From NCBI RefSeq assembly GCF_000007005.1, contig NC_002754.1: a stretch of DNA of 64,000 nt; one strand, written 5' to 3'. Shown piece by piece: positions 1,869 to 57,790 of this stretch (positions are counted from its first letter, which is position 1; the number at the start of each line of letters is the position of its first letter). The notes under the pieces are model-generated. The model did not search any database and was not told the origin of the DNA. It saw only the letters and a list, made by a program, of their open reading frames with translations. This stretch comes from Saccharolobus solfataricus P2. Lineage in GTDB: Archaea; Thermoproteota; Thermoprotei_A; Sulfolobales; Sulfolobaceae. Both the position numbers and the translations under genes were made by a program.

Positions 1869-2160
1869 AAGTGAAGAAGATAAAGATCCAAATCCGATAG
1901 AATGCGAAATATGTAAAGCAATAGTTTCAGTATTATGTGGACTATTAGCTGAAGGAGTAGCTAAAAGTGTGGCATGTGACGAAGCTTGTGGAACAGTTTG
2001 CTTAATATTTGTTGAGGATCCCATTATTTATGATATTTGTGTGGTAATATGTATACCTTCTTGTGATGAACTACTTCAACTAATTATCTCAATAGGAGTA
2101 GCGACTGCATGTGGACTAGGTGGTGAGTATCTATGTCAAAAGGCTGGTCTGTGTTGCTAA
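1822..2160 (+). CDS. Halocin C8-like Cys-rich bacteriocin domain (possibly pseudogenised precursor)
   Basis: The frame is open from 1822: ...SESEEDKDPNPIECEICKAIVSVLCGLLAEGVAKSVACDEACGTVC...YLCQKAGLCC*, with 13 Cys from 1903 on. The CxxCK start and CxKAGLC end resemble halocin C8 (CSACK...CNRAGLC). The first canonical start is GTG 1969, inside the domain. Confidence 0.65.
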   Translation, partial: YQINCISLYPLQQRSESEEDKDPNPIECEICKAIVSVLCGLLAEGVAKSVACDEACGTVCLIFVEDPIIYDICVVICIPSCDELLQLIISIGVATACGLGGEYLCQKAGLCC

Positions 2161-2977: not shown

Positions 2978-4166
2978 CGATAGACCCAAAATCATCTTAC
3001 AAAAATAATTCTGATTGAACAATATTAAATTTGTTAAACATAACCAAGTTTATAACAACATTAAGAATTCAAGAAATTGGAAAAAAGGTTTAAAGCGAGA
3101 AAATCGGTATTACCATAAGGGTTTACGGTATGCCAATTCCCTCATTAAACATTCAACAAATAGTGTATAAATTACTTTCCATGATTAACTTCCACGGGAG
3201 GAAGGGAGAGGAAGCTACAAAAACCTCGGTCTCAGCATCATTACACAACGATTCAGTGGAAAAACGTTTCCAAAGCTTACAACGTATCACCACAAACAGT
3301 GAGGAATTACGTTGAAGAACAAGGATTACAAGTAGTGGAAAAATACTGGAATAAGTGAAACAAATCTCACTCGAAACGCTTAAGGACGTGAAGGAGATAG
3401 ATCTATCATTAGATTGGACAACTTGGTACGGAAAACTTGTAGAAGGTTTGGGAAGCTCAGAAAAGGGATACTCGTGGAACTACACAACAACGACGAAATA
3501 CGAGGGAAAAATCCTCATACTCGCCTTCATACCGCAAGTTAATGACAAAGGATGAGATTGTCAAGATCTTGATTGAACAAGTGGTTGCAATGGGATTTAG
3601 GATTAAACTGATAGCACTTGATGCAGGATTTTACACGGTTGAGGTGATAAAATTCATATCCCAGTTCAACTACATTATTGGAGTTCCCGTTAGTGATGTC
3701 AAGATCTACGAGGAGTTTGATGGTGAATATGTTACGAATAGTAAGAGGCGTAGTAAGGGTGAGCAGGTTAAATTTAGGCTGATCGTGTATAGGGAGAAGA
3801 TCAAGAGGAAAAAGAAGGAGGTTGTTTACTTCGCCAGGGGTACAAATCTCGATTTACCCAAGAATAAGGTCTTGGAGTAACAAGGTGAGGAATCCGATAG
3901 AAACGTCTTATAAGAGTGTTAAATCGTTCCTCCCCTTTACGTGTTCAACAAAGTTCATTTTCCGCATGTTAATCTTCTTACTTGACGTGCTCGTTTACTC
4001 CTTGTACACTATCCTCAAGGATAACGTGAAAATGAGGACTTTCAAATCACTAATTTCAAAAAATATTGAAAATATATCTGAGATAGAGATTTATTTAAGT
4101 AAATTGGAGGAAACGCTTACTAATACTACAGGTTTATTTTTAAGGAGGTGATTTTTGGGAGTACCG
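2978..4166 (+). mobile_element. Decayed ISH3-family element (ISC1225-like); transposase broken by frameshifts and stops
   Basis: Fragments NIQQIVYKLLSMINF, LSLDWTT, IALDAGFY and RNPIETSY. Imperfect TIRs CGATAGACCCAAAATC / CGGTACTCCCAAAAATC. Confidence 0.8.
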
Positions 4167-4186
4167 GTTAGGGCGGGGTAGCTCAC
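4167..4186 (+). mobile_element. IS200/IS605 right-end tip
   Basis: GTTAGGGCGGGGTAGCTCAC has the same terminal motif as the ISC1316 right end at 27306. Confidence 0.65.
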
Positions 4187-4277
4187 AGATATATAAACCC
4201 TATGAAAGTCTGATCCCTATTTCGAATGCAGATATTCCTAAAATAAGTCCATAATAATATATGGCCAATAAGTGCTA

Positions 4278-4706
4278 TTATGAAAACATCAGGTAATATG
4301 CTGCTGCCATTGATCCCAGAAAATGTATCATTACTGGTGCAAACATAGTCATGGCAACTGGAATGAAAACTACTACATAAACAATTAAACCCGTGGCTAA
4401 ACCAAGTCCTAATGCCTTTAAACTGAATGTAAGATTTAATTGTCTTACATATAATACAATCACACCAAATATTACACCTATTACTATGCTGACCACAAAA
4501 TGCGCAATCATGCCCACAGCTACAGCGTTACTCATTGATGCACCTAGAGCCATACCCATTACCATAGGAAAACCCTGCTGGAGGACGACCTAAGCTCATT
4601 GCCCCTATCATTAGCACTATGACCATTGCTATACCACCCAGGATTCCACCTATTATAGAGGAAATTATAATATTTTTGCTCTGAGATTTTCTTTCTTATT
4701 ATCCAT
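4278..4706 (-). pseudogene. Frameshifted multi-TM membrane protein
   Basis: Hydrophobic segments in three frames (KNIIISSIIGGILGGIAMVIV..., MVMGMALG...HFVVSIVIGVIF). ATG at 4706. Confidence 0.55.
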
Positions 4707-5076
4707 TTATCTTCACATACTCTAAACTTAATAATTGAACATACACAATAATTTCTTCATTGGATTATCCTAATTCATACTAGAAATTTTCACAATTAGT
4801 CGTTTTAATCGAGATGTAGCTAAGGAATTAGAACGTGAAAAAACGGCCTCTGAAAAAGGTTTATGTGAGAAGGTTATGAAATCTTTTTGTGGTAGTACTA
4901 GAATGAACCTCGTAAGCCCTTTCACATAAGCTTTTCTAAAATAATGTCTTTGTTAAAATTTCTATATCTTAAACGTTAAACGAGCGTTTTTCCATACTAC
5001 TCCAATATTTTTACAAACGTTTTTTGGATTTCATGACTGTTTGAGAACACTCCCAAAAAACAAGCTTAATATATTT

Positions 5077-5135
5077 ATGTTACATTAGTACTAACCGTGT
5101 CATACGACATTGCTGAGGAATTTTTGAGGAAGGGG
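5077..5135 (+). pseudogene. 5' remnant of a PaREP1 gene, cut off by the structured RNA element
   Basis: Encodes VSYDIAEEFLRKG versus VYYEEAEEFLSKG of 9081..9446, with visible nucleotide similarity around AGTACTA and GCTGAGGA. Confidence 0.45.
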
Positions 5136-5306
5136 TCGGACTTTCATTGAGGTTTCATGAATTTGTATTCAACCCCTCGTCCTCATACCCCTTATTTTCC
5201 TCCCCATGCCGTCTACGGGACTAACTCCCTTCAAGGACATGGGGAGTTTCATTGGGTGCCTTCCTCCCCCTCACATTGCTCACAGAGTTCATTGTGGCAC
5301 CCTCTA
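5132..5306 (-). ncRNA. Structured K-turn-rich RNA, copy 1 (candidate omegaRNA-like guide scaffold)
   Basis: Homologous to 7443..7627. Stems GGGUGCC/GGCACCC and CUCCCCAUGUC/GGCAUGGGGAG, with repeated GA...AAUGA K-turn-like strands. TATA (TTTATAAA) lies ~30 nt upstream. Confidence 0.65.
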
Positions 5307-5326
5307 ACTTAATGTTAGCATGAAAG

Positions 5327-5334
5327 TTTATAAA
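5327..5334. promoter_or_regulatory. Palindromic TATA box, possibly bidirectional
   Basis: TTTATAAA has A-rich BRE-like flanks on both strands. It is correctly spaced for a leaderless ATG at 5357 (+) and for an RNA start near 5305 (-). Confidence 0.55.
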
Positions 5335-5356
5335 TTTTAATGCTTCTAACATTCTT

Positions 5357-5521
5357 ATGGAGCAAATAGTTTTCAGATCAACGGTCTCAAGTTATGGTAC
5401 AGATAAGTATGGGAATAAAAGATATGGCATAACAATACCTTCAAAACTAAGGGATAAGGGTGAGAAATTATACGGCAAGGAGGTGATTGTAATTGTTATC
5501 CTACCAGATGATGAGGAGTAA
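5357..5521 (+). CDS. Small AbrB/SpoVT-like (DUF2080-like) DNA-binding protein, 54 aa (below the ORF-track cutoff)
   Basis: MEQIVFRSTVSSYGTDKYGNKRYGITIPSKLRDKGEKLYGKEVIVIVILPDDEE* has the GITIP...GKEVIVIV swapped-hairpin pattern. It overlaps the start of the tnpB-like gene. Confidence 0.7.
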   Translation: MEQIVFRSTVSSYGTDKYGNKRYGITIPSKLRDKGEKLYGKEVIVIVILPDDEE

Positions 5522-6602
5522 ATTAATAGGGTCTAAGGAAGCACTTGATAACTTTCAATTCGTCACAATAAACGGTAAAGTGATTTTCAACGAGAAAGAC
5601 AAGGTTGTTAGGATTGCTAGGGTTTACTCACAAGTTGTTAAGAGTGCTATTAAACCGTTGTTTGATGGGAAGAGTGTTGATGAGTTAACTAAGGAGTTTT
5701 ATAATGTTTTACCTAACTATGTTTATCTTGAAACTGCTTTAAAGCAAGCTAAGACAATTGTTGAGGGTTTGTTAGAAAGGGAGGAAGAGAGGGGTGAGAT
5801 AATTCATGCAAGGATTAGAAAGTTCTGGTTTGGGAGTAGGGGTAATAAAAGTGATAGGGGTAATAGGAATATGAAGTTCCGCGTTTTAGAAGACCGCGTG
5901 TTAATTAAGGTTAGAGACCCGTGGAATAAGGAGTGGATTTTTGGGAAAGCTTATTTCGGTAAGGAGTACTTACCACTGCTTAAGGAGTTGGAGGATTTAG
6001 CTCAAAGGAAGGAGGAGGGTTACGGTGCTTTAGTAAGTTTTAAGGAAAAGTCGATGATTCACCTTCAAATCCCACTCTGGTTGTACTTGAAACACTTCTC
6101 TTTACCGAAGCCTACGGGTTACGGTTTGATTGCTGGTTTTGATTTAAATAGTGACAGACTGAACGTTGTTGTGATTAACAAAGATGGTAAAGTTATTACT
6201 ACTAGAACTTTTTGGTATTCAGATGTTACTAGGCCAGGTTTTCCGAAAGTGAAAGCTAGGGCTTTACGGTTAAACGCTTTATCTAACTCCCTGGAGTTCC
6301 TATCAAGGATTGGTGTTGATTACGTCGTTTTTGAGGATTTATTCCTAGTTAAGAGGAGGAAGTTTATCAAGAGTAAAAGTGGTAATAGGAAGATTAGCAA
6401 ATTTGCTAAGAAGCAGTTACTAATTCACGGTGTTATTAAATCTTTAAGGTTTGGTTTTAACGTCGTGTTGGTCAATCCTAAGGGTACTACTAACTCTGGG
6501 GAGCATGATAGGGTAATGAGGGAAAAAGGGTTTGACAAGCATACGGCATCAGCTTACTTAATAGCATTAAAAGGGTTAGGAATGTTGAATGATATTAAAT
6601 GA
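5493..6602 (+). CDS. tnpB: TnpB-like RuvC protein lacking the C-terminal zinc finger
   Basis: RuvC-I IAGFDLNSD, RuvC-II VVFEDL and RuvC-III-like GFDKHTASAYLIA. NPKGTTNSGEH replaces the NPxxTSxxCxxC ribbon. GGAGGTGA lies upstream of TTG 5493. Confidence 0.75.
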   Translation: MLSYQMMRSKLIGSKEALDNFQFVTINGKVIFNEKDKVVRIARVYSQVVKSAIKPLFDGKSVDELTKEFYNVLPNYVYLETALKQAKTIVEGLLEREEERGEIIHARIRKFWFGSRGNKSDRGNRNMKFRVLEDRVLIKVRDPWNKEWIFGKAYFGKEYLPLLKELEDLAQRKEEGYGALVSFKEKSMIHLQIPLWLYLKHFSLPKPTGYGLIAGFDLNSDRLNVVVINKDGKVITTRTFWYSDVTRPGFPKVKARALRLNALSNSLEFLSRIGVDYVVFEDLFLVKRRKFIKSKSGNRKISKFAKKQLLIHGVIKSLRFGFNVVLVNPKGTTNSGEHDRVMREKGFDKHTASAYLIALKGLGMLNDIK

Positions 6603-6603
6603 C

Positions 6604-6987
6604 ATGAACTTCACGACTTATCGGAAACTGTTGACAACGGCAAAGGATTACTTAAAAGCTTCCGAACTGTCATTTGAGCACAACCTTTATGAAGCCTCAG
6701 CATTAAACAGTGAAATTTCAGCCCAACTCTCCTTAATTTTCAAGTTAGGAATAGAGCCTCCCCGAACTCACGGGATTAGAGAGTTACTTTCATTAATATA
6801 CGCGAAACTTGGAGATAAAAGGATAAGTGACTTTACGAAGGAGAATAGAGAAAAACTCATTATTCTAGAGAACGTGAGAGGAAAGTCACAGTACGGTTTA
6901 CCTCCAGTGTCTAGGGACGAGGCTGAAATAGCTTTAAGTACTGCGCAGGAAATACTAAAACTTGTAGAATCATTATGGAACCTATAG
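6604..6987 (+). CDS. HEPN domain protein (COG2250-like) of a HEPN-MNT toxin-antitoxin pair
   Basis: AKDYLKASE...PPRTHGIRELL...SQYG...EAEIAL. The likely start is ATG 6604 (the ORF track starts at 6589). Confidence 0.8.
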   Translation: MNFTTYRKLLTTAKDYLKASELSFEHNLYEASALNSEISAQLSLIFKLGIEPPRTHGIRELLSLIYAKLGDKRISDFTKENREKLIILENVRGKSQYGLPPVSRDEAEIALSTAQEILKLVESLWNL

Positions 6988-7295
6988 AGAAGATAAAGTT
7001 ATTACGAAACTGGAGGGAAGCACTTAGAAAGCTTAACCTTGAAAGATTTGAAGAAGTATATGTGTTCGGCTCTGTAGTAAGCGACAAGATAACTGGGGCA
7101 AGTGATATTGACTTAATCTTGGTTATTAAACGGGGTGAAGATAGGAATAAAGCGCTAATAGGCTTCTTCGATGAGGTCGAGAGCAAACTAGGGGAGAAAG
7201 CATCATATCTGTTTGACGTTAAAGTAATTTATGAAGATGAGAAAGAATTACCGCCATACAAGTTCTTTCTCAGAGATGCAGTGAGAGTAAAATGA
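6975..7295 (+). CDS. Minimal nucleotidyltransferase (MNT) antitoxin
   Basis: VYVFGS...SDIDL motif. Overlaps the HEPN stop. Confidence 0.9.
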   Translation: MEPIEKIKLLRNWREALRKLNLERFEEVYVFGSVVSDKITGASDIDLILVIKRGEDRNKALIGFFDEVESKLGEKASYLFDVKVIYEDEKELPPYKFFLRDAVRVK

Positions 7296-7442
7296 CTTTG
7301 TCTGTAATATATTTACGTAACTTTTAGTCATTTCTAATTAACTTCTAATCCTCTTAAAGCTATTAGGTAAGTTGATGACATATGCCTATCAAGTTACCTC
7401 ACGTTCATAACCCAAAGCTTAAAATCTTTATAGTTAATTACT

Positions 7443-7627
7443 CAGAGAGTATCACTATGAACTCTATGAGCAGTTGAGAGGGGGAGGAAAGTACTCAATG
7501 AAACTCCTCATGTCGTGATTGGGAGGTAGGCTCCCTAACCTAGGCACGGGGAGGGAGAAGAAGTGATGAGACTGAGTAACTAGTAGTAATTAAAAATAAC
7601 TATTAGTTACGATGAAAGCCGAACTCT
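7443..7627 (+). ncRNA. Structured K-turn-rich RNA, copy 2
   Basis: Aligns to the reverse complement of 5132..5306 with compensatory stem changes (GAGUAU/GUACUC; CUCCUCAUGUC/GGCACGGGGAG). The 11-bp hairpin TAACTAGTAGT/ACTATTAGTTA is closed by CUGAG and CGAUGAAA. It has its own TATA-like element at ~7418. Confidence 0.65.
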
Positions 7628-8060
7628 GTTGTACTTCCTAAGATTTTAAAAGATAAGATAGTTCATCTTAATACACAGAAGATTTTTGCGTGCTTTTTTA
7701 GGGTATTATTGCCGTTGCCAACAGTTTTCGATAAACCGTAAAGTTTATATTATTTTGCATATATATTTATAAAAGTTGAAACAATCCACAAACCATCACT
7801 TTTCTCTACTTTTTAAGATATCTCCTCACTAAGATATCAGGAGGGATATTGTTAGAGAATGCTATTCGATAAATTGTTGATTAGTATATAATGAACATCT
7901 TAAACAAGATCCCACCCACTATTATTGCTAAAGTTATCATAAAGAGTATTTTGTAGTTCTTCAAAGAATCCCTACTTGTCATTATAGATAAGCCTAAAAG
8001 TAACGGGCGACGGATCTATTAAATAAGCTGCTGAAAAATTTACTAGTGCCTCAAATATAA

Positions 8061-8384
8061 TCAAGATTCCCATAAAATCGTCATCAACCTTACATTATAG
8101 TTAATAAACTTAGGTAATATGCCAAAATAATATATCAACGTAGGTATTAGCTCGTAAATATAATAATGAAAAGTAACGGATGATGTTACAATTAAGTAAG
8201 CTGGCAAAACTAAATAGAGTAAAATATGCCCGTTAAGGTAGAATGCATAGGGGAAAATTATTGATAAGAATAACATCGCGTTCTCTAAACCCTTAGCTTC
8301 TTGCGCGTAAAGTAAAAATGAAGAAGCTAGTAATGCTATTATCGAAATAGAATAAACATTGTAGATATTCACTCCATGAGCCAA
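8061..8384 (-). pseudogene. Fragment of a decayed polytopic membrane protein gene
   Basis: Hydrophobic 107-aa ORF flanked by stop-interrupted coding-like sequence (~7700..8800). Confidence 0.35.
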
Positions 8385-9080
8385 AAACCTCCAGAGATAA
8401 ATAGAAAAATGAGAGAGACAATAGCTAGAAATTGAGGCAAGTATCTACTGTATTCAGTCTCCCTTCTTATCATTACTTAAGCTCAGCATTATTTCCACTA
8501 ATTGCTTTCCCTTTTCATTGAGGTTATAATATTCTTCTTCTTTTAATATTAATGGCTCAAGAATTTTTAGATGATAATTTAATCATATTATTGAGCAACG
8601 TAGCATAAGGCTCCCTAATCATATGATATGTAAATCCTAAAAATCTAATAAACGTGTCGTTTTATACTGCTTAGTTGATCTGTTGAATATTTTTAAATTA
8701 AATCACCAATATCTTCCTTTCAATTAATCTCATGATGTTCAATTTCTGTTTATGAATCCTCTTAACTCTTGGCGAAAATTCAATAAATCCATAAAGCAGT
8801 TTTATACTTAAAGCGCAATCACAGTAGAACTATAGTTATAAGTTCGCTATTGCTTTGTCGAACTCTCAAACTTTCTTAAGTATAAGATTCAATTTTTCTT
8901 AAAGCCAAACGCCGAATTAGGAGTAAGTAAACGGAAGTCAGAAAGAGTTATACTTGCTTATAGTCTGAAGGACAACAACATTTCTGAAACTATACAAGAC
9001 CTTTCCGTATGATAGGAATAGAGTCTTGCCCTTTAAAGTCTCAGAAAGTATAAAAGTGTGTTTTATAATGTTTATTAATA

Positions 9081-9446
9081 ATGAGTATAAGTACTAGTGC
9101 AGAAGTATATTACGAGGAGGCTGAGGAGTTTTTATCTAAGGGTGATCTTGTTCAAGCTTGCGAGAAGTATTATAAGGCTGCTGAGGAAGCTATAAAACTT
9201 CTCGTTATAGAAAATAACCTAAAAGAAATAACAAATAACGTTAAGAACAAAGGAAGATGGAAAAGCGAAAACTTGTTTAAAGCTTCCAAATTGTTACGAA
9301 GTAATAACACTGAAATACCAATTCTATGGAAAAGTGCATGGACTCTTCATGTGGAAGGATTCCACGAGCTTAGTTTAAACGAGAAGGAAGTTAAAAAACT
9401 TAAGGAAGATGTTAGAAAACTGGTCATATTTGCAGTTAATAGTTAA
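9081..9446 (+). CDS. PaREP1 family protein
   Basis: AEEFLSKGDLVQACEKYYKAAEEAIK...LHVEGFHE signature. Confidence 0.9.
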   Translation: MSISTSAEVYYEEAEEFLSKGDLVQACEKYYKAAEEAIKLLVIENNLKEITNNVKNKGRWKSENLFKASKLLRSNNTEIPILWKSAWTLHVEGFHELSLNEKEVKKLKEDVRKLVIFAVNS

Positions 9447-9563
9447 GGATTTTACTCTCAATTAAAGAGACCATTGAAGTTTAATTAGCGTTCCATATAA
9501 TTTATAGTAAATTAATAATATTACTATCACCATTTGAAAGATGAAGTATGAGTTTCTAAGGGC

Positions 9564-9717
9564 CATTCAAGTTTTCATTGCAAATTCATTATATTTCAAA
9601 AACTATGACGAATTTAATTGGGTGATAACGGTTTATAAAGGGAATACAAGCTTAATCGTGTTAATACTTTTATATTTATATTATTCATAAATTGAAATCG
9701 TAATGGATCCGTGAATC
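9564..9717. mobile_element. Degenerate ~155-bp MITE (SM-type)
   Basis: Ends CATTCAAGTTTTCATTGCAAATTC and AAATCGTAATGGATCCGTGAATC match the 29172..29326 element. Confidence 0.55.
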
Positions 9718-9906
9718 ACCTCAGCATTTTGTAACATCAGATTAATACCACGTTAGTATTTTTAGTTTATCTCAAGATAAAAGAAATTCCCGTACTGAAG
9801 TGGACTAAGCTTAAACTAAGTTACAATGGAAAGGTTGGGAATTGCCTTGTTAAGAACGTCACTCGCATAATCCGTTATGTCTCTAAACACACATTATATA
9901 ATGTAA

Positions 9907-11070
9907 TTATATAAAGGATAAAGATATTTTAAGTCTGTTGGATACAGATTGACCCGCCATACTCAAGATAAACTCAAAGATGAAACGATAAAAGGGAGCA
10001 TTGTTCATAAGCTCTAGAATTCTATTGTCCTTAATATTGGCGTAAGCTATTCCTAGTGAACTAGAGATTTCATCTAAATAGAATAAGTAGTTACTTTCTG
10101 CGGTAATTTCATTTATTATATTAAATAGAATATCCGGTTTGTCTACTGACTCCAAGAAAATGATCCCGACGTTAATTTTCACGTCACCTTTTAACTTCTG
10201 AAAGGCTTCCAAAGCAATGTCTAAGTATCTTTCCTTGTTAGTGTAGATATAAGCTGTATTAGCGGAAAGAGCGCGCATCATACTATTTGTGGTCTTATCT
10301 CCATGTTTAATCCTCTCTATACTATCAATTAACTTGTCAACCTCGTCAATTTCATTGAAGATGGAGTGATAGCTCACTAACGAGTGAGCGGAGAAATAGA
10401 ATTCATAGTCATATTTCTTTAAGCCTTCCCTTAAACTCTCCACGAACTTCTCGCTTTCTTTAATTCTTCCTAGACCTCTTAATGCCACTGCCAAAGTATA
10501 ATTATTTAGAATTTTCTCCGTTTTTTCTCTTTTTACTCTTTCATTAAGCATAAGAGCGTCTTCAACCAATTCTGACCTGGCCGGTTCCTTATCAAACCTA
10601 ATTGCTATACTCCTTAGAAATTCAGAAATATTGGATTCAGTATTATAAGATGGATTATCTCTTAACAATCTCATGAAATACTCCATAGGATCATAATCCT
10701 CTAATAGGTGAGAACATTCTGCGATTACCCCCATTAAAGCTAACTTGGAATACGTAGGCTTCCTTCCACTGAGGCATTCGAGAAGAATAAGCGTATTAGA
10801 AACTAAAACCTTATCCTCAACAATTCTCTTATTTTTCTGAAGTATTATAGACATAGTATCCTTGTCTCCCATTATTAGGTAAACTTCAGCTAGTTTAACT
10901 AAGTGATCAGCAGAATGATCTCTCCTCTTTAAGATCTTATAGTACTCGTCCAGCTCATCTTTAGTTAGAATATTTTCCGAAGCTCTGTATAGATAATAAT
11001 AAATCTCGGCAAATCTCCTTTCATAGGCACTTAGACCCCTTGTGAGTTCCTCAACTTCTTTGAAGTCCAT
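9907..11070 (-). CDS. Hypothetical all-helical (TPR-like) protein
   Basis: 387-aa ORF with helical periodicity. A partial near-identical copy lies at 33..271. Confidence 0.75.
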   Translation of the reverse strand: MDFKEVEELTRGLSAYERRFAEIYYYLYRASENILTKDELDEYYKILKRRDHSADHLVKLAEVYLIMGDKDTMSIILQKNKRIVEDKVLVSNTLILLECLSGRKPTYSKLALMGVIAECSHLLEDYDPMEYFMRLLRDNPSYNTESNISEFLRSIAIRFDKEPARSELVEDALMLNERVKREKTEKILNNYTLAVALRGLGRIKESEKFVESLREGLKKYDYEFYFSAHSLVSYHSIFNEIDEVDKLIDSIERIKHGDKTTNSMMRALSANTAYIYTNKERYLDIALEAFQKLKGDVKINVGIIFLESVDKPDILFNIINEITAESNYLFYLDEISSSLGIAYANIKDNRILELMNNAPFYRFIFEFILSMAGQSVSNRLKISLSFI

Positions 11071-31501: not shown

Positions 31502-32794
31502 ATGATGAGTAGTAAGTGGTTTGAAAAAGGATGGTTTAGGTGGATGCTAGTAGTAGGTGCAACTATTTCTATGGCACTTGTTAGTGTGTATGAATATTCA
31601 TGGACATTATATACTGTACCTCTAGGTAGAGTATTTCACGTAGCTCCAGGATCACCAGCCCTAGGACTTACATATACAATATATATTATCGTCCAAGCAT
31701 TATCGATGTTCGTTGCAGGTAGGATTGCGGATAGGTATGGTCCTAGACTAATTTCCATGTTAGGTGGGATAATTACTGGCATTGGATATATTAGCTCTGC
31801 CTTTGCTAAATCCTTGCCTATACTATATCTTACCTATGGTTTCGGAAGTATAGGAGTGGGCATAATATACGGTACTGCCATAAGTACTGCTGTCAAATGG
31901 TTCCCTGATAAAAGAGGTCTAGCCACTGGAATTATAGAAATAGGTTTCGGTGGAGGATCATTCGCATTATCCCCTTTGATACAATATATTATCACCTCAA
32001 TTAGTTACACAGCTGCATTCACTTACATGGGAATTGTGCAACTAATAGTTATAACTCTGCTGGCGTTCTTCTTTGCTTATCCTCCTCCCCAATGGTTACC
32101 TAAGGGCTTTAATGCTGAGGAGTACGAGAAAAAACGTAAGATGATAAAGAGAAGCAAAAATGATTATACTGTATCGCAAATGGTAAAGACATGGCAATGG
32201 TGGGTAATTTATATAGCGTTTTTCCTTATTGCTGGATCCGGCTTATCCATTATTGGACATTTAATACCATACGGTAGATCACTAGGATTTAGTATAGCTG
32301 CTGTAATTGCGGTATTTTTATTTCCCTTTGCCAATGGGTTAGGAAGATTTGTTATGGGTACTGTATCTGACTATTTAGGAAGACCTTATACTATGACGCT
32401 GTCATTTGGAATTAGTGGGATTTCCATGCTCTCAATAGCATTCATACCGAAGATTGCATCACTATACCTTGCTTTGATTTTCCTAACAGCATTCACGTGG
32501 GGACCATTATTCTCTTTGTTCCCACCACTGGTGGGTGACTATTATGGACCTAAACACTCTGGAGCTAATTATGGATTAACTTACACTGCAAAGGCGTTAG
32601 CAGGCATATTTGCCGGTTATGGTGCATCAATATTGTTTACCTCATATGGCATAAAGGAGACATTAATTATAACTGGTTCAATGGCTATAATGTCTGCTAT
32701 CCTAGCCTTAACTCTAAGACCACCGAAAATACCTACTGCGCAGATTGCCGGTGCTGAAAGCCAGAAAGGTAGTATAGAGTCCAAAACTAAGTAA
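31502..32794 (+). CDS. MFS permease, oxalate/formate antiporter (OFA) family
   Basis: YEYSW, GRIADRYGP, AVKWFPDKRGLATG, ANGLGRF and GANYG motifs. Confidence 0.85.
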   Translation: MMSSKWFEKGWFRWMLVVGATISMALVSVYEYSWTLYTVPLGRVFHVAPGSPALGLTYTIYIIVQALSMFVAGRIADRYGPRLISMLGGIITGIGYISSAFAKSLPILYLTYGFGSIGVGIIYGTAISTAVKWFPDKRGLATGIIEIGFGGGSFALSPLIQYIITSISYTAAFTYMGIVQLIVITLLAFFFAYPPPQWLPKGFNAEEYEKKRKMIKRSKNDYTVSQMVKTWQWWVIYIAFFLIAGSGLSIIGHLIPYGRSLGFSIAAVIAVFLFPFANGLGRFVMGTVSDYLGRPYTMTLSFGISGISMLSIAFIPKIASLYLALIFLTAFTWGPLFSLFPPLVGDYYGPKHSGANYGLTYTAKALAGIFAGYGASILFTSYGIKETLIITGSMAIMSAILALTLRPPKIPTAQIAGAESQKGSIESKTK

Positions 32795-33002: not shown

Positions 33003-34094
33003 ATGGGAGTAAAAGATGAAGTGAAGTATGTAGAGATAGTGTATAGAGGTATCTTCCAGAAAAGATTAGCAAAGTACATTGCAGAAGGAATCGTTTACAC
33101 TGCCAGGGAAATGGGGAGACCAGCCTTGTCTTTTGGCAGATATGGGGACTCCCCAGAAAGAAACGGAGTACCAGCAAAATACTATGTTGGAATAGGAGAT
33201 GGTGTAAATGAAGAAGACCTAATAGGTTACTCTACAAGAGTAGAACCAGATCTAGTGGATGTGATTATAGTACTAGACGATACCCTATTAAAGGGTGTAG
33301 AATCGTGGGCATGGCAAGGAGTTCAACCCATAAACCTCAAACTAAAGAGTAACGGGACAATGTTGGTAACTTCTACCAAGAGAATTAACGAGTTATTAAA
33401 AATGATACCTAAAAAGGACTTTAATTGGACTCTAGGAGTAATAAAAACTGAACCATCATTTTCGGGACTATGGGCATTTAAGGATGACTTAACCATGGAG
33501 AAAGTCTGGGGAGGATTAGCAAAGCTAAGACCTGATATCATAGATTTAGACCATTTACTTAAATATGTAACCAAAAAACAAGATGCTAACAAGAGAGTAT
33601 CTGCAGTAAGAGAAGCATATTCCTCAGTAGATTATAGAACTGTGATGAAAGGTGAGGGAATAGATTTCGTATATAATCCACCTAGGTTACTAACATGGCA
33701 GGAAATGTTAGAGGGTACAGTAATTCCAGCAGTTCCGAGGGGAAAGAGGAATGAACTCTTTAAGAGAGGAACTACAAAATTTGAAAGACCTACAGTAGAT
33801 TTCGATACTTGTATCAAATGTAAACTATGTTGGGTGTACTGTCCAGATGAATGTTTCGATGAAACTCCAGATGGATATTATGATATAGCTTACGACTACT
33901 GTGTAGGATGCGGAATATGCGCTGAAGTGTGCCCAGTTAAGGATTGCATAGTAATGGTAGACGAATCGATGTTCACGGATTACAGAAGGCCATATGAGAT
34001 GTGGAAAGAGGATAAAGCAAAGTATAAGGAATGGTTAAAAACTGTAAGGCAAGCTAGGAAGGAAAGAGTTTACGTTCCGGGGTTGGGAAGATGA
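33003..34094 (+). CDS. porD: 2-oxoacid:ferredoxin oxidoreductase fused gamma/delta subunit
   Basis: Gamma-like N-terminal domain plus two 4Fe-4S motifs (CIKCKLCWVYCP; CVGCGICAEVCP). Confidence 0.9.
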   Translation: MGVKDEVKYVEIVYRGIFQKRLAKYIAEGIVYTAREMGRPALSFGRYGDSPERNGVPAKYYVGIGDGVNEEDLIGYSTRVEPDLVDVIIVLDDTLLKGVESWAWQGVQPINLKLKSNGTMLVTSTKRINELLKMIPKKDFNWTLGVIKTEPSFSGLWAFKDDLTMEKVWGGLAKLRPDIIDLDHLLKYVTKKQDANKRVSAVREAYSSVDYRTVMKGEGIDFVYNPPRLLTWQEMLEGTVIPAVPRGKRNELFKRGTTKFERPTVDFDTCIKCKLCWVYCPDECFDETPDGYYDIAYDYCVGCGICAEVCPVKDCIVMVDESMFTDYRRPYEMWKEDKAKYKEWLKTVRQARKERVYVPGLGR

Positions 34095-35338
34095 CTGAGG
34101 TTAAGAAATTAGTAGAAAGAGAGGTATTAATGAATGGAACACAAGCAGTAGCTCATGCAGCAATGTACGCCGATGTAGACGTTGTTGCTGCATATCCAAT
34201 TAGACCATATACTGAAGTTATGGATACGATTTCCAAATTAATAGCCGATGGAGAATTAGATGCGGAGTTCATAGTTGCTGAGGGAGAACATGGACAGTTT
34301 GAGACCGTGAAGCACGCATCATTAGCGGGGGCAAGGACTCTAGTGGGGAGTAGTGGAGTGGGTTGGCTTTACGCAATGGAAGCAATAGTAGTTACTGCTA
34401 CAGATCGTGCTCCAGTAGTCGCAATAATAGGAAATAGAGCTTTAGATGATCCTGGAGCCTATGGAGTTGAACATAATGACGCATTAATGGTGAGAGACGT
34501 GGGTTGGCTATTGGTTTGGGTAGATACTGCTCAAGAGGCTTTCGATACTGCATTACTAGCTTATAGGATAGCTGAGGATCAAAGGGTATTACTACCATTA
34601 GGTATCTCTATGGATGGTGGATTTCTAACACACTCGGAACAGATAGTAAGATTGCCTCCTAGAGAACTAGTTAAGAACTTCTTACCACCATATAATAGAG
34701 GTAAGTACTTGGTTCACCCTGATAATCCGATTACGGTAGCTCCTCAAGTTAATGAGGATTGGGTTATGGAAATAAGAAGACAACACGAAGAGGCCATGGA
34801 GAGGGCTAGAAGTGTAATAGTTGAGGCTTATGAAGAATTTAAAAAGGTATTTGGAAGATATCCCGGCTCAACTAGCGATTTACAGATGCCAGAAAACCCA
34901 TTTGTAGAACCGTATATGATTGATGACGCAGAGGTAGTGCTAATTGGAATGGGAACAGTATCTAAACCGATGAAGGTCGCAATAAAGAATATGAGACGGC
35001 AAGGCTATAAGGTGGGAATGTTAAGGATAAGATGGTTCAGGCCATTCCCAACACAAGATGTTATTAGGTATTTAGCTAATTCTAGAGTAGTGTGTGTTAT
35101 TGATAGGGATTACTCAATGGGATCTCCAAATAGAGGAGGCGTGATTTACCACGAAGTTAGATCTTCGTTATACGATCTAGATCAGAGGCCTAGAGTTATG
35201 AATTTCATAGGAGGATTAGGTGGGAGGGAAATAACTATCCAAGATGTGGAAAAGATAATTAAGATAGGTTATGAACATAGAGATACTCCCATAACGAAAC
35301 CCGTTTATTGGGTTGGGGTAAGAGGAGACCCTTGGTAA
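34091..35338 (+). CDS. porA: 2-oxoacid:ferredoxin oxidoreductase alpha subunit (oxalate-oxidoreductase-like)
   Basis: YPIRPYT, GELDAEF, EGEH, GSSGVG, RWFRPFP and GGLGG motifs. Confidence 0.9.
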   Translation: MTEVKKLVEREVLMNGTQAVAHAAMYADVDVVAAYPIRPYTEVMDTISKLIADGELDAEFIVAEGEHGQFETVKHASLAGARTLVGSSGVGWLYAMEAIVVTATDRAPVVAIIGNRALDDPGAYGVEHNDALMVRDVGWLLVWVDTAQEAFDTALLAYRIAEDQRVLLPLGISMDGGFLTHSEQIVRLPPRELVKNFLPPYNRGKYLVHPDNPITVAPQVNEDWVMEIRRQHEEAMERARSVIVEAYEEFKKVFGRYPGSTSDLQMPENPFVEPYMIDDAEVVLIGMGTVSKPMKVAIKNMRRQGYKVGMLRIRWFRPFPTQDVIRYLANSRVVCVIDRDYSMGSPNRGGVIYHEVRSSLYDLDQRPRVMNFIGGLGGREITIQDVEKIIKIGYEHRDTPITKPVYWVGVRGDPW

Positions 35339-56640: not shown

Positions 56641-57790
56641 ATCCTGGCAGTTCAAGAGGCCCATAAAAACTTTTTAAAATTAGAACCTTTAATTTTGGTA
56701 TGACCAAAGAATTGACGAGGGAGGAGTACTATAAGGCATTGGAAAAGGCAGTTAACGAGGTCATACTATCCATGACTGGAACGAGGAAGGACGTTGCCAA
56801 GAGGCTACTCTTGGGGGCGGTTGTGGGAAGAAATGCTACCGAGATAGCTCAAGAGGCCGAGATGGACTACGAGACCGTACTGAATAACTTGGACAAGGCA
56901 GCTCAAGCCAAACTAATCGAGGTCGTGAAGAAGTTAGTCGGGGATCATCCTGTCCTTCTCATAATAGACGACACCCACGACCACAAGCTCTACGCTAGGG
57001 CCATGCCGGTCTCCAGAAACGGGGCGCAGATCTTCTACTGTAGGGCGCACAAGAGGTTCGAACCCGCGATCCAACTCCTTGTGATTGGCGTCAAGGATCT
57101 GGTGAACAACCAGATCTACGTGATCCACATAATTGCCTACATACCCCGAAAGGTGGAAGAGGAGCTCAAGCGTAGGGGTGAGGAGGTGAAGTTCAAGACC
57201 AAGATAGATGCCCTCTTGGAGTTTCTCTCCTCCCTCTCAGGTTTGAATGTAAAAGCTAGGGTCTTCGACTCATGGTACGTGAACTCGAGGACTCTCCAAG
57301 GGAATACTGTGGGGGAACTCAAGTCCAGCGCGCGAGTCGTCGAGGGTGGCAGATCCGTGCCCGTTAGCGAGTTCCCCCAAGGGGAGTACCTGGTAGAGTA
57401 CTTGGGGACTCCCATAAAGTTACTTGTTATAGATGACTATAAGGGTTACGGGAGGAGGTATTTCTTCTCCACCGACCTTAACGACACGGCTGAAGATATC
57501 ATAACGACCTGGGAGAACCGTTGGGACATAGAGGTCTTGATCAGGGAGCTCAAGGCCTTGGGACTCGAGGGTGGGTCCTTCTTGACCTGGGTTAGGAACT
57601 CAGGCTTCGTGGCCTTGAAGGCTCTCTCCCTCCTCGTTGTTCAATACTTCAAGTACTCCACGGGTCTGATGCTCGGGGCCAAAAGGTTGGCCAGATTGAT
57701 AAAAAGTATTTACCGTGAGGCGGGTGGGATCAAAAAACTGTTCAAGAGGAGGAGAAAACCGTAAAGTGCTATATGTTATTCAGTCTTGGC
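56641..57790 (+). mobile_element. ISC1217-like IS (ends approximate)
   Basis: GC-richer block carrying an intact DDE transposase. I could not fix the TIRs. Confidence 0.7.
56700..57764 (+). CDS. DDE transposase (ISC1217-like)
   Basis: LIIDDT, VFDSWY and NRWDIEVLIRELK motifs. Confidence 0.88.
   Translation: MTKELTREEYYKALEKAVNEVILSMTGTRKDVAKRLLLGAVVGRNATEIAQEAEMDYETVLNNLDKAAQAKLIEVVKKLVGDHPVLLIIDDTHDHKLYARAMPVSRNGAQIFYCRAHKRFEPAIQLLVIGVKDLVNNQIYVIHIIAYIPRKVEEELKRRGEEVKFKTKIDALLEFLSSLSGLNVKARVFDSWYVNSRTLQGNTVGELKSSARVVEGGRSVPVSEFPQGEYLVEYLGTPIKLLVIDDYKGYGRRYFFSTDLNDTAEDIITTWENRWDIEVLIRELKALGLEGGSFLTWVRNSGFVALKALSLLVVQYFKYSTGLMLGAKRLARLIKSIYREAGGIKKLFKRRRKP

Follow-up and report, generated by a model that had tools for sequence, protein, structure and literature searches.

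A divergent K-turn RNA at one end of a TnpB-like mobile element in Saccharolobus solfataricus, a candidate guide RNA

TnpB proteins of the IS200/IS605-IS1341 type (ISDra2; OMEGA systems) are encoded together with an omegaRNA that overlaps the 3′ end of tnpB, while in archaea a second relevant group has been described, the RIIIr-4 'RHH/MazE-TnpB' clade, which lacks the C4 zinc finger, carries an Asp to His exchange in RuvC-III, and is located downstream of an AbrB/MazE or RHH gene (PMC10691335; Altae-Tran et al., 2023). This clade was regarded as immobile, a toxin-antitoxin role was proposed for it, and its guide was guessed to reside in the 3′ untranslated region (UTR) (PMC10691335). Here we analyse a stretch of 64,000 nucleotides (hereafter the window) of contig NC_002754.1 from Saccharolobus solfataricus P2, in which a full element at positions 5132-6638 (1507 bp) combines an outward-facing structured RNA, a shared TATA box, a small gene, and a gene encoding a TnpB-like protein of the SSO2105 family (PF27229). 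The protein features are matched by the published RIIIr-4 description, as the locus is archaeal, lacks the zinc finger, shows the Asp to His exchange, and includes an upstream small gene. Unlike in that account, the Sulfolobales branch is mobile, and a conserved RNA lies upstream of the tnpB-like gene and diverges from it.

The locus shares with IS200/IS605-IS1341 tnpB and its omegaRNA the RuvC/TnpB fold, the lack of inverted repeats and target duplications, insertion beside a short motif, and miniature RNA-only derivatives. As with an omegaRNA, the scaffold ends exactly at the transposon end, faces outward, and is located on the strand that has the target motif 5′ of the element. It departs from these systems in that the RNA is self-promoted at the end opposite to the tnpB 3′ end, with tnpB inverted relative to it, and in that the RNA terminates in a kink-turn (K-turn). 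The protein differs as well, having no zinc finger, a RuvC-III motif D-x-H instead of DRDxN, and a small gene upstream; a guide function, finally, is here one that we infer.

Part of this picture was already known, namely the protein features through the published clade description, HEPN-MNT pairs, the Rfam small RNA (sRNA), and the orfB and SMN-type elements of Sulfolobus. In the accessible literature, we found no mention of SSO2105, of PF27229, or of Sso133 as an RNA, nor any statement that Sso133 is the core of a K-turn RNA of ~175 nt forming one end of a TnpB element, that this RNA is divergent and self-promoted, or that members of the clade move and have given rise to many RNA-only derivatives. 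The link between RNA and TnpB, the flipped geometry, and the mobility are thus apparently new.

Two insertions at a resident HEPN-MNT operon

The boundaries of the full element, a member of subfamily A, were derived from 27 genome loci, which together with a metagenome scan using the RNA core amounted to 111 distinct insertion sites. On the left, homology among loci breaks off sharply at window position 5132; on the right, it ceases ~36-40 nt past the stop codon of the tnpB-like gene in the genome loci. In the window copy the right end (6603-6638, + strand; ...TTCACGACTTATCGGAAACTGTTGACAAC), at which homology among subfamily-A loci stops, closes the element 36 nt after this stop codon, leaving no omegaRNA-like element over the tnpB 3′ end, as the initial annotation had noted. 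Next to it is a target-derived GGC trinucleotide (6639-6641, + strand), which reads GCC on the RNA-sense strand and represents a candidate motif resembling a target-adjacent motif (TAM). The right ends read ...CTGTTGnCnAC|GGC in subfamily A and ...AAAATGTTACA|GAC in subfamily B, and left-end type and right-end type co-segregate across elements.

Two empty sites confirmed these ends. In L028 (GCA_000245095.2), a 91%-identical copy interrupts the gene of an alpha-ketoacid dehydrogenase E1-beta subunit (...GGCAGTA|GGGGTCGG...GTCAAC|GGCACAGC...), the intact orthologue of which in L029 reads ...GGCAGTA|GGCGCAGC..., while the second empty site was found in S. shibatae (L151) as ...TTTTTGAGGAA|GGCAAAGGATTAC..., with nothing in between. 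In both of them GGC occurs once, directly at the insertion point, the sequence reads A^GGC, and no bases are duplicated or lost. Beyond the A at -1 and the right-end GGC or GAC, neither flank motifs nor target duplications were detected, and the ends are of the IS200/IS605 type, with no inverted repeats, no target duplication, and a short motif adjoining the insertion. A 31-nt match of the distal RNA hairpin to the subfamily-B tnpB 3′ end was considered as a terminal inverted repeat and rejected, being a same-sense likeness to one hairpin arm that is absent in subfamily A. Because the two empty sites and the rejoined HEPN gene described below fix the boundaries, the element spans 5132-6638, and it is a complete copy of a mobile element of the tnpB-only type that is IS200/IS605-like and occurs in Sulfolobales and other Thermoproteota.

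The target of this insertion was a HEPN gene. An orphaned 5′ end (5097-5131, + strand) with a GTG start and 11 codons (MSYDIAEEFLRK) precedes the element, with a TATA-like box at about 5066-5079, and the remainder of the original toxin gene follows at 6639-6987 (+ strand). Joining the two parts yields an intact open reading frame (ORF) starting MSYDIAEEFLRKAKDYLKASE and scoring 87.8 bits, whose N-terminus corresponds to the MSY(D/N)IAEEFLR(K/R)AK(D/E)YL with which the HEPN orthologues of S. shibatae, S. tokodaii, and others begin; the GGC at 6639-6641 is required to rebuild the 'LRKAKDYL' of these orthologues. The present HEPN ORF (6589-6987, + strand; Pfam PF05168, 1.4e-23) is chimeric and begins at 6589 or 6604, inside the element, the right end of which supplies a substitute in-frame N-terminus and ATG. 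The partner nucleotidyltransferase MNT lies outside the element (6975-7295, + strand; Pfam PF01909, NTP_transf_2, 3.4e-8; NCBIfam MntA-like), and its ORF overlaps that of HEPN by 13 nt, as is characteristic of a HEPN-MNT pair. S. shibatae carries the same pair without the full element, in uninterrupted DNA (locus L151), whereas HEPN and MNT are absent downstream in all 27 other genome loci, and the metagenome loci revealed only abrB/tnpB matches beside the RNA. HEPN-MNT is a pre-existing resident toxin-antitoxin operon, the HEPN ORF of which was split by the insertion. The operon-like run of HEPN and MNT with the tnpB-like gene that was initially annotated is physically present, but it arose because the element inserted inside the HEPN ORF, and the role as cargo, addiction module, or effector assigned to the pair had to be abandoned.

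All subfamily-A right ends were observed to encode a (N/K)FTxYRKLLxTA-like peptide (window 6580-6641; e.g. L005 5080-5131), which is in frame with the window HEPN and can be aligned with the first positions of the Pfam HEPN model. An ATA-to-ATG change gives the window peptide a start codon, so that the chimeric HEPN may still be made, and the question arises whether the right end of subfamily A may have been captured from a HEPN gene.

The second RNA of the window belongs to a different insertion, a miniature element of subfamily B (7300-7627, 328 bp, + strand), which resembles a miniature inverted-repeat transposable element (MITE) and is inverted relative to the full element. Starting four bases past the MNT stop codon, it consists of the target-side GTC, a reverse-complemented right end with the last tnpB codons (7300-7350), a remnant, and the RNA gene. 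The inverted miniature nature follows from 7300-7350 being the reverse complement of the subfamily-B right end; this match is located 118 nt from the RNA promoter side, giving the size of 328 bp, and the closest relatives of the right-hand copy are subfamily-B left ends. The insertion is shared by S. shibatae, where it has been disrupted by rearrangement. At 7300-7627, a miniature derivative of the sister subfamily inserted independently of the full element and at an earlier time. We consider this two-insertion anatomy, together with the mobility of the elements, as practically certain. The objection raised in advance that such a motif might be a plain MITE is therefore half right, in that the right copy is a MITE, but as it derives from a TnpB-like element it provides no argument against a partnership of RNA and protein.

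In S. shibatae (L151), the orthologous miniature element is split at ...CCTAGG into 1927-2016 (- strand) and 3205-3454 (+ strand), and the 3′ part of the RNA is inverted upstream of HEPN along with the right flank known from the window, the breakpoint being inside the element.

Over the 111 distinct, unrelated flanks, the elements fall into two size classes of ~1.5 kb and ~0.29 kb, comprising full elements of 1.45-1.53 kb (n=30) and miniature elements of 220-328 bp, mostly 280-304 bp (n=36), the latter at different sites, with a few intermediate deletion forms. In miniature elements, the genes are lost and only 80-95 nt remain on the tnpB 3′ side, but the right end and the complete RNA with its TATA box are always retained; roughly half of the RNA copies have no adjacent tnpB. 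No viral relatives were found in IMG/VR by protein comparison, and no plasmid or phage relatives by blastn against PLSDB or INPHARED. The length of subfamily B, 1454-1480 bp, fits the catalogue name ISC1476, which may denote it. By description only, the miniature elements are similar to SMN1 (320 bp; 'Sulfolobus mobile non-inverted-repeat'), which is reported along with the ISC-series orfB elements (PMC3718332, PMC3839810): it is small, without inverted repeats, mobilised in trans, and close in size to the 328-bp copy, and the literature attributes it to ISC1733.

Intermediate deletions measure 600-1300 bp (e.g. L096, L062, and L023). In L008 (8208-8558), a subfamily-A miniature element is found 7 nt beyond a subfamily-B right end, and in the window, too, the two elements lie no more than 700 bp apart; insertions may tend to cluster or to occur at neighbouring sites.

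The outward K-turn RNA and its TnpB-like partner

The K-turn RNA of the full element (5132-5306, - strand) is directed outward and terminates with the leftmost base of the element. With the RNA of the miniature element (7443-7627, + strand, outward to the right) it aligns at 78% identity in inverted orientation, in agreement with the initial annotation of two homologous structured elements of ~180 nt. A covariance model (CM), the construction and search of which had been recommended there, was trained on 113 copies from elsewhere and both window copies. It produced only two strong matches in the 64-kb window, the left RNA with 189 bits (E 3e-58) and the right RNA with 133 bits (E 2e-40), and a 30-nt core pattern occurred twice versus 0 expected. 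Since the model finds exactly two copies in 64 kb, the paired elements are real and far beyond chance.

Helix consensus was assessed on 113 distinct RNA copies (alignment A5). The eight-helix consensus is 97.5% paired, compared with 42-50% in controls in which the partner strands were shifted by 1-3 columns, and compensatory double changes occur at 13 pairs (321 cells). G-U pairs make up 17.5% of the cells, and pairing drops to 81% on the opposite strand; as the G-U pairs unpair there, the structure belongs to the outward transcript. Assigning the strand by the folding energy of single sequences was rejected, with z-scores of -4.3 sense versus -3.6 antisense for the left RNA, and it is the G-U pattern that discriminates instead. 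The right RNA (z-score -3.0) has kept its helices through compensatory changes. No copy-specific segment exists inside the RNA, the variable parts being shared subfamily modules.

At its terminus, the left RNA forms a K-turn, GGGG-UAU-GA-GGA / UCC-GA-CCCC. The consensus reads GGGG-NAU-GA-GGA ... UCC-GA-CCCC in subfamily A and GAGU-GAU-GA-GGC ... GC(C/U)-GA-ACUC in subfamily B, so that both stems covary, with GGGG/CCCC changing to GAGU/ACUC. A canonical K-turn with a canonical (C) stem, a 3-nt bulge, tandem G.A/A.G pairs, and a noncanonical (NC) stem is present in 108 of the 113 copies, the left copy included, whereas the right RNA has one mismatch in each stem and fails the strict test. Other AUGA motifs were also inspected, and the canonical pattern did not fit them. 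Described in terms of C/D boxes, the K-turn combines GUGAUGA as box C with CUGA/CCGA as box D, and the 4-bp stem closing it is built from the last four bases of the element. In its box C-like (G)UGAUGA, box D-like CUGA/CCGA, 4-bp terminal stem, and covariation, the RNA resembles archaeal box C/D sRNAs, from which it differs by the lack of C′/D′ boxes, by the lack of a guide upstream of box D, where the sequence is conserved, and by a long 5′ domain. Rfam C/D families gave no match at E values up to 1 in window positions 3000-10000.

The central hairpin of the left RNA (5200-5262, - strand) corresponds to Rfam RF02814, Sso133 (62.6 bits; gathering score 44 bits), a curated sRNA family named after S. 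solfataricus, and the match is on the strand of the left RNA; the right RNA scores 31.4 bits, below the gathering score. The 73 positions of the Rfam model represent this hairpin, whereas the conserved RNA extends over ~175-195 nt with five further helices and the terminal K-turn, and the name and description line of Sso133 makes no link to a TnpB element. In a remark in PMC3325985, a conserved L7Ae-associated noncoding RNA (ncRNA) is linked to the 'transposase' Sso2103, which is two ORF numbers from the family namesake SSO2105; we take this remark only as a lead towards a use of the K-turn in vivo.

The small gene and the RNA are separated by a region with a palindromic TATA box, TTTATAAA (5327-5334, without strand), which is located ~25 nt from the RNA start and ~25 nt from the ATG at 5357 and is kept in nearly all full-length copies aligned. 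Judging from this spacing, from which we infer the transcription starts, it would act as a bidirectional archaeal promoter. The right RNA is preceded by a degenerate TATA sequence only (TTAAAA 7419-7424 / TTTATA 7427-7432), so that the initial labels of a K-turn and an own TATA-like promoter for each RNA are borne out by the left copy, and by the right one only in weakened form.

Wherever the region upstream of the tnpB-like gene is present and aligned, it contains the left element of ~200 nt, the TATA box, and the small gene. In nearly all genome loci covering this region, the RNA is found upstream in divergent orientation; it occupies the transposon end opposite to the tnpB 3′ end across the 111 distinct insertion sites, and its position and orientation are the same beside relatives of 44-54% protein identity (CM scores of 40-48 bits in L011, L014, and L019, and of 14-18 bits in L021 and L152). 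The proposal that a divergent, separately promoted structured RNA belongs with the TnpB-like protein has thereby held up, and the RNA is very likely an integral functional part of the element.

The RNA is a mosaic: helix 1, the helix-6 loop, the linker, and the 3′ hairpin each come in two or three variants, which are found in varying combinations, suggesting that elements have recombined with one another. In the copy of L129 (336-534), the linker after helix 4/5 carries an insertion of 18 nt, and this position is thus tolerant.

The TnpB-like gene (5508-6602, + strand) encodes 364 aa, or 369 aa from an alternative TTG start at 5493; residues are numbered from the Met at 5508. Our Pfam scan gave no match for either the small or the large ORF, while NCBIfam TIGR01765 matched the large protein (4e-20), and weak NCBIfam matches to TnpB, guided_TnpB, Cas12f, and TIGR01766 were obtained over residues 275-335 (RuvC-II). 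A profile of the TnpB-like sequences found no match in the PDB, and only fold comparison works: the AlphaFold (AF2) model (predicted local distance difference test, pLDDT, 91.7; predicted template modelling score, pTM, 0.86) had as its top Foldseek matches in the PDB Cas12k, Cas12f, ISFba1 TnpB, Fanzor2, and RuvC (E 5e-10 to 1e-5; template modelling score 0.5-0.58). The 364-aa protein is accordingly modelled with a TnpB/Cas12-type fold (WED-REC-RuvC).

Alignment of 35 diverse members showed D212, E276, and P324 to be invariant and D343 and H345 nearly invariant. The motifs 'NPxGTS' and 'lDxHtaSAy' are separated by 15-18 residues in these members, and because there is no cysteine between 'NPxGTS' and the RuvC-III motif, the protein has no zinc finger. 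The initial description as a RuvC protein without a zinc ribbon can be kept for the relationship to TnpB, the missing Cys pairs, and the conserved D and E, but not for the third catalytic residue, which is His. Homologues number more than 460, nearly all from Sulfolobaceae and related Thermoproteota and often several per genome, and they are annotated as 'transposase' or by Pfam PF27229 (SSO2105_N); clustering at 50% leaves 275 representatives for the entire family. Intact copies are under purifying selection, with a median ratio of nonsynonymous to synonymous substitution rates (dN/dS) of 0.20 (n=31).

The small gene (5357-5521, + strand; 54 aa) overlaps the tnpB-like start by 14 nt and is conserved ahead of the tnpB-like gene in most of those genome loci whose sequence reaches this far upstream. 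The AF2 monomer of its product is predicted to follow a beta-beta-alpha pattern (pLDDT 86) that is compatible with an AbrB/MazE fold, and no match for an AbrB identity was found in Pfam, by PDB profile search, or by Foldseek. Two loci, L009 (912-2207) and L058 (815-1035), have no small gene, and the tnpB-like gene there abuts the RNA promoter region.

A putative guide role and its alternatives

Read in RNA sense, an occupied site has the order 5′-GCC | right end ... genes (antisense) ... promoter, scaffold | flank, and the empty site reads 5′-GCC | flank. The position of the target motif at the far end, on the strand of RNA sense, is thus the one required by the TnpB homing model; apart from the inversion of tnpB and the small gene relative to the RNA, canonical IS200/IS605 TnpB has the same retention geometry, the target motif being the TAM and the guide coming from the flank beyond the RNA-proximal end. 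From this site geometry and the TnpB fold, an omegaRNA-like role appears most economical. The outward K-turn RNA would then be the omegaRNA equivalent of the family, its transcription presumably continuing into the flank, and read-through is plausible, since the first 30 nt are free of T5+ runs in 98 of 110 flanks. As transcription would continue into the flank of each copy, the 3′ guide would vary from copy to copy. The scaffold would be bound by the TnpB-like protein, a putative nuclease without zinc finger (D, E, D-x-H), possibly with L7Ae on the K-turn, and the protein would target the unoccupied site, that is GCC (subfamily A) or GTC (subfamily B) followed by the flank on the RNA-sense strand. 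The small protein would probably regulate the shared promoter or the nuclease, and the miniature elements may be stand-alone guide RNAs served in trans. The notion of duplicated scaffolds with different 3′ guides survives in this model only as far as flank-derived 3′ sequences would differ, because the two copies are separate insertions.

Several observations weigh against this model. The RuvC-III motif D343-x-H345 places a His at the canonical third catalytic Asp, so that the D-E-D triad is incomplete and nuclease activity is putative. Within the elements examined, no Y1 or serine transposase was seen, nor was a transposase found that would mobilise them; in the window, a scan limited to ten long ORFs (≥330 aa) found no canonical TnpB, and Y1 transposases were not looked for. 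The candidate TAM has 3 nt and comes from two empty sites, both of subfamily A. The terminal K-turn with its 4-bp end stem resembles the termini of C/D box sRNAs and could mark the mature 3′ end. The 3′ ends of C/D box sRNAs are trimmed near the terminal stem, and the same processing here would leave no guide. Sso133 is restricted to the 63-nt hairpin in the centre, so that the predominant transcript may fall short of the full RNA, and the right copy may be inactive, given its weakened K-turn stems and degenerate TATA box. On balance, we put a guide function of the RNA for the TnpB-like protein at about even chances, and the explanation as a whole, limited by this very step, is slightly favoured. 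The most specific form of it, a hyperthermophile TnpB lineage with a guide RNA uncoupled from tnpB, in which a self-promoted K-turn scaffold at the opposite end takes its guide from the flank, L7Ae is a probable cofactor, and miniature elements spread the guides, is offered tentatively.

A rather unlikely alternative, to be taken seriously nonetheless, is that the RNA functions as a K-turn sRNA of the transposon, bound by L7Ae and with its mature 3′ end at the element boundary, and that, rather than guiding, it regulates transposition or expression, acts in trans, or provides a folded end for transposase recognition. The box C/D-like K-turn sits exactly at the end of both RNA and element, and Rfam Sso133 represents an internal hairpin only, as such a role would suggest; in addition, transposon-derived regulatory RNAs are documented in Sulfolobus, e.g. 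RNA-257 from ISC1904 (PMC3674436), and an ncRNA associated with L7Ae has been mentioned in the literature as complementary to the 3′ UTR of a transposase, which is a lead only. A purely DNA-level role is, however, opposed by the strand-specific G-U pairs over eight helices, some of them long-range, the partner protein has the fold of an RNA-guided nuclease, and the geometry of end and strand suits a guide. Antisense action of the RNA on the 3′ UTR of its own tnpB was tried and rejected, as there is no overlap with the mRNA and the duplex energies with the own tnpB 3′ end or UTR were no better than those of shuffled controls in five elements; RNA-257 was likewise dismissed as a relative of the K-turn RNA, since it belongs to ISC1904.

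The published proposal for the RHH/MazE-TnpB clade (PMC10691335), by which the small gene and the tnpB-like gene would be an immobile toxin-antitoxin pair with a guide in the 3′ UTR, fits the conservation of the small gene, its tight coupling to tnpB through the 14-nt overlap, and the patchy, multi-copy distribution of the family. It is nevertheless improbable for this branch, which is mobile, as evidenced by the two precise empty sites, by the 111 different flanks, and by miniature derivatives that have themselves been mobilised; just ~36 nt separate the stop codon from the element end, and miniature elements drop the tnpB 3′ region and retain the upstream RNA. A regulatory or antitoxin role of the small protein remains compatible with the omegaRNA-like model. 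Hardly any weight is left for the arrangement originally envisaged, a single new RNA-guided system consisting of abrB-tnpB-HEPN-MNT between two homologous scaffolds, where HEPN-MNT would serve as cargo or effector. Although the physical order in the window prompted it, HEPN-MNT is absent from 27 of 27 other genome loci, only abrB/tnpB accompany the RNA in metagenome loci, the element ends at 6638 within the HEPN ORF with an empty site in S. shibatae, and the right RNA belongs to a different subfamily with its own right end at 7300-7350. The two RNAs reside in independent insertions, one full (subfamily A) and one miniature (subfamily B).

If the RNA were indeed a guide, OMEGA systems would not be bound to a 3′-overlapping omegaRNA, and a thermostable TnpB that is compact (~360 aa), lacks the zinc finger, and has a modular RNA would become a candidate RNA-guided nuclease. 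L7Ae/K-turn biology would be tied to transposon-encoded guide RNAs, and a clade published as an immobile toxin-antitoxin would turn out to consist of active OMEGA-type transposons whose RNA has a new architecture and which employ an RNA-binding protein of the host as cofactor, so that the view of this clade as immobile would need correction. Even if the RNA is not a guide, the orphan Sso133 gains a context as a conserved part of a transposon and its miniature derivatives, and the annotation of the window is corrected to two insertions, one split HEPN gene, and no cargo.

Other features of the window

The surrounding region is rich in mobile-element debris. Overlapping short ORFs at 3355-4151 (+ strand) have no family match and resemble gene fragments, and an IS701/IS4-like transposase ORF is located at 56700-57764 (+ strand), with weak NCBIfam matches below the cut-off. 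A PaREP1-family gene (9081-9446, + strand; Pfam 2.4e-34) with faint HEPN similarity lies 1.5 kb to the right. Further downstream, ORFs matching the delta (33003-34094, + strand) and alpha subunits (34091-35338, + strand; oxalate oxidoreductase / PorA-like) of a 2-oxoacid:ferredoxin oxidoreductase adjoin an MFS transporter of the oxalate/formate type (31502-32794).

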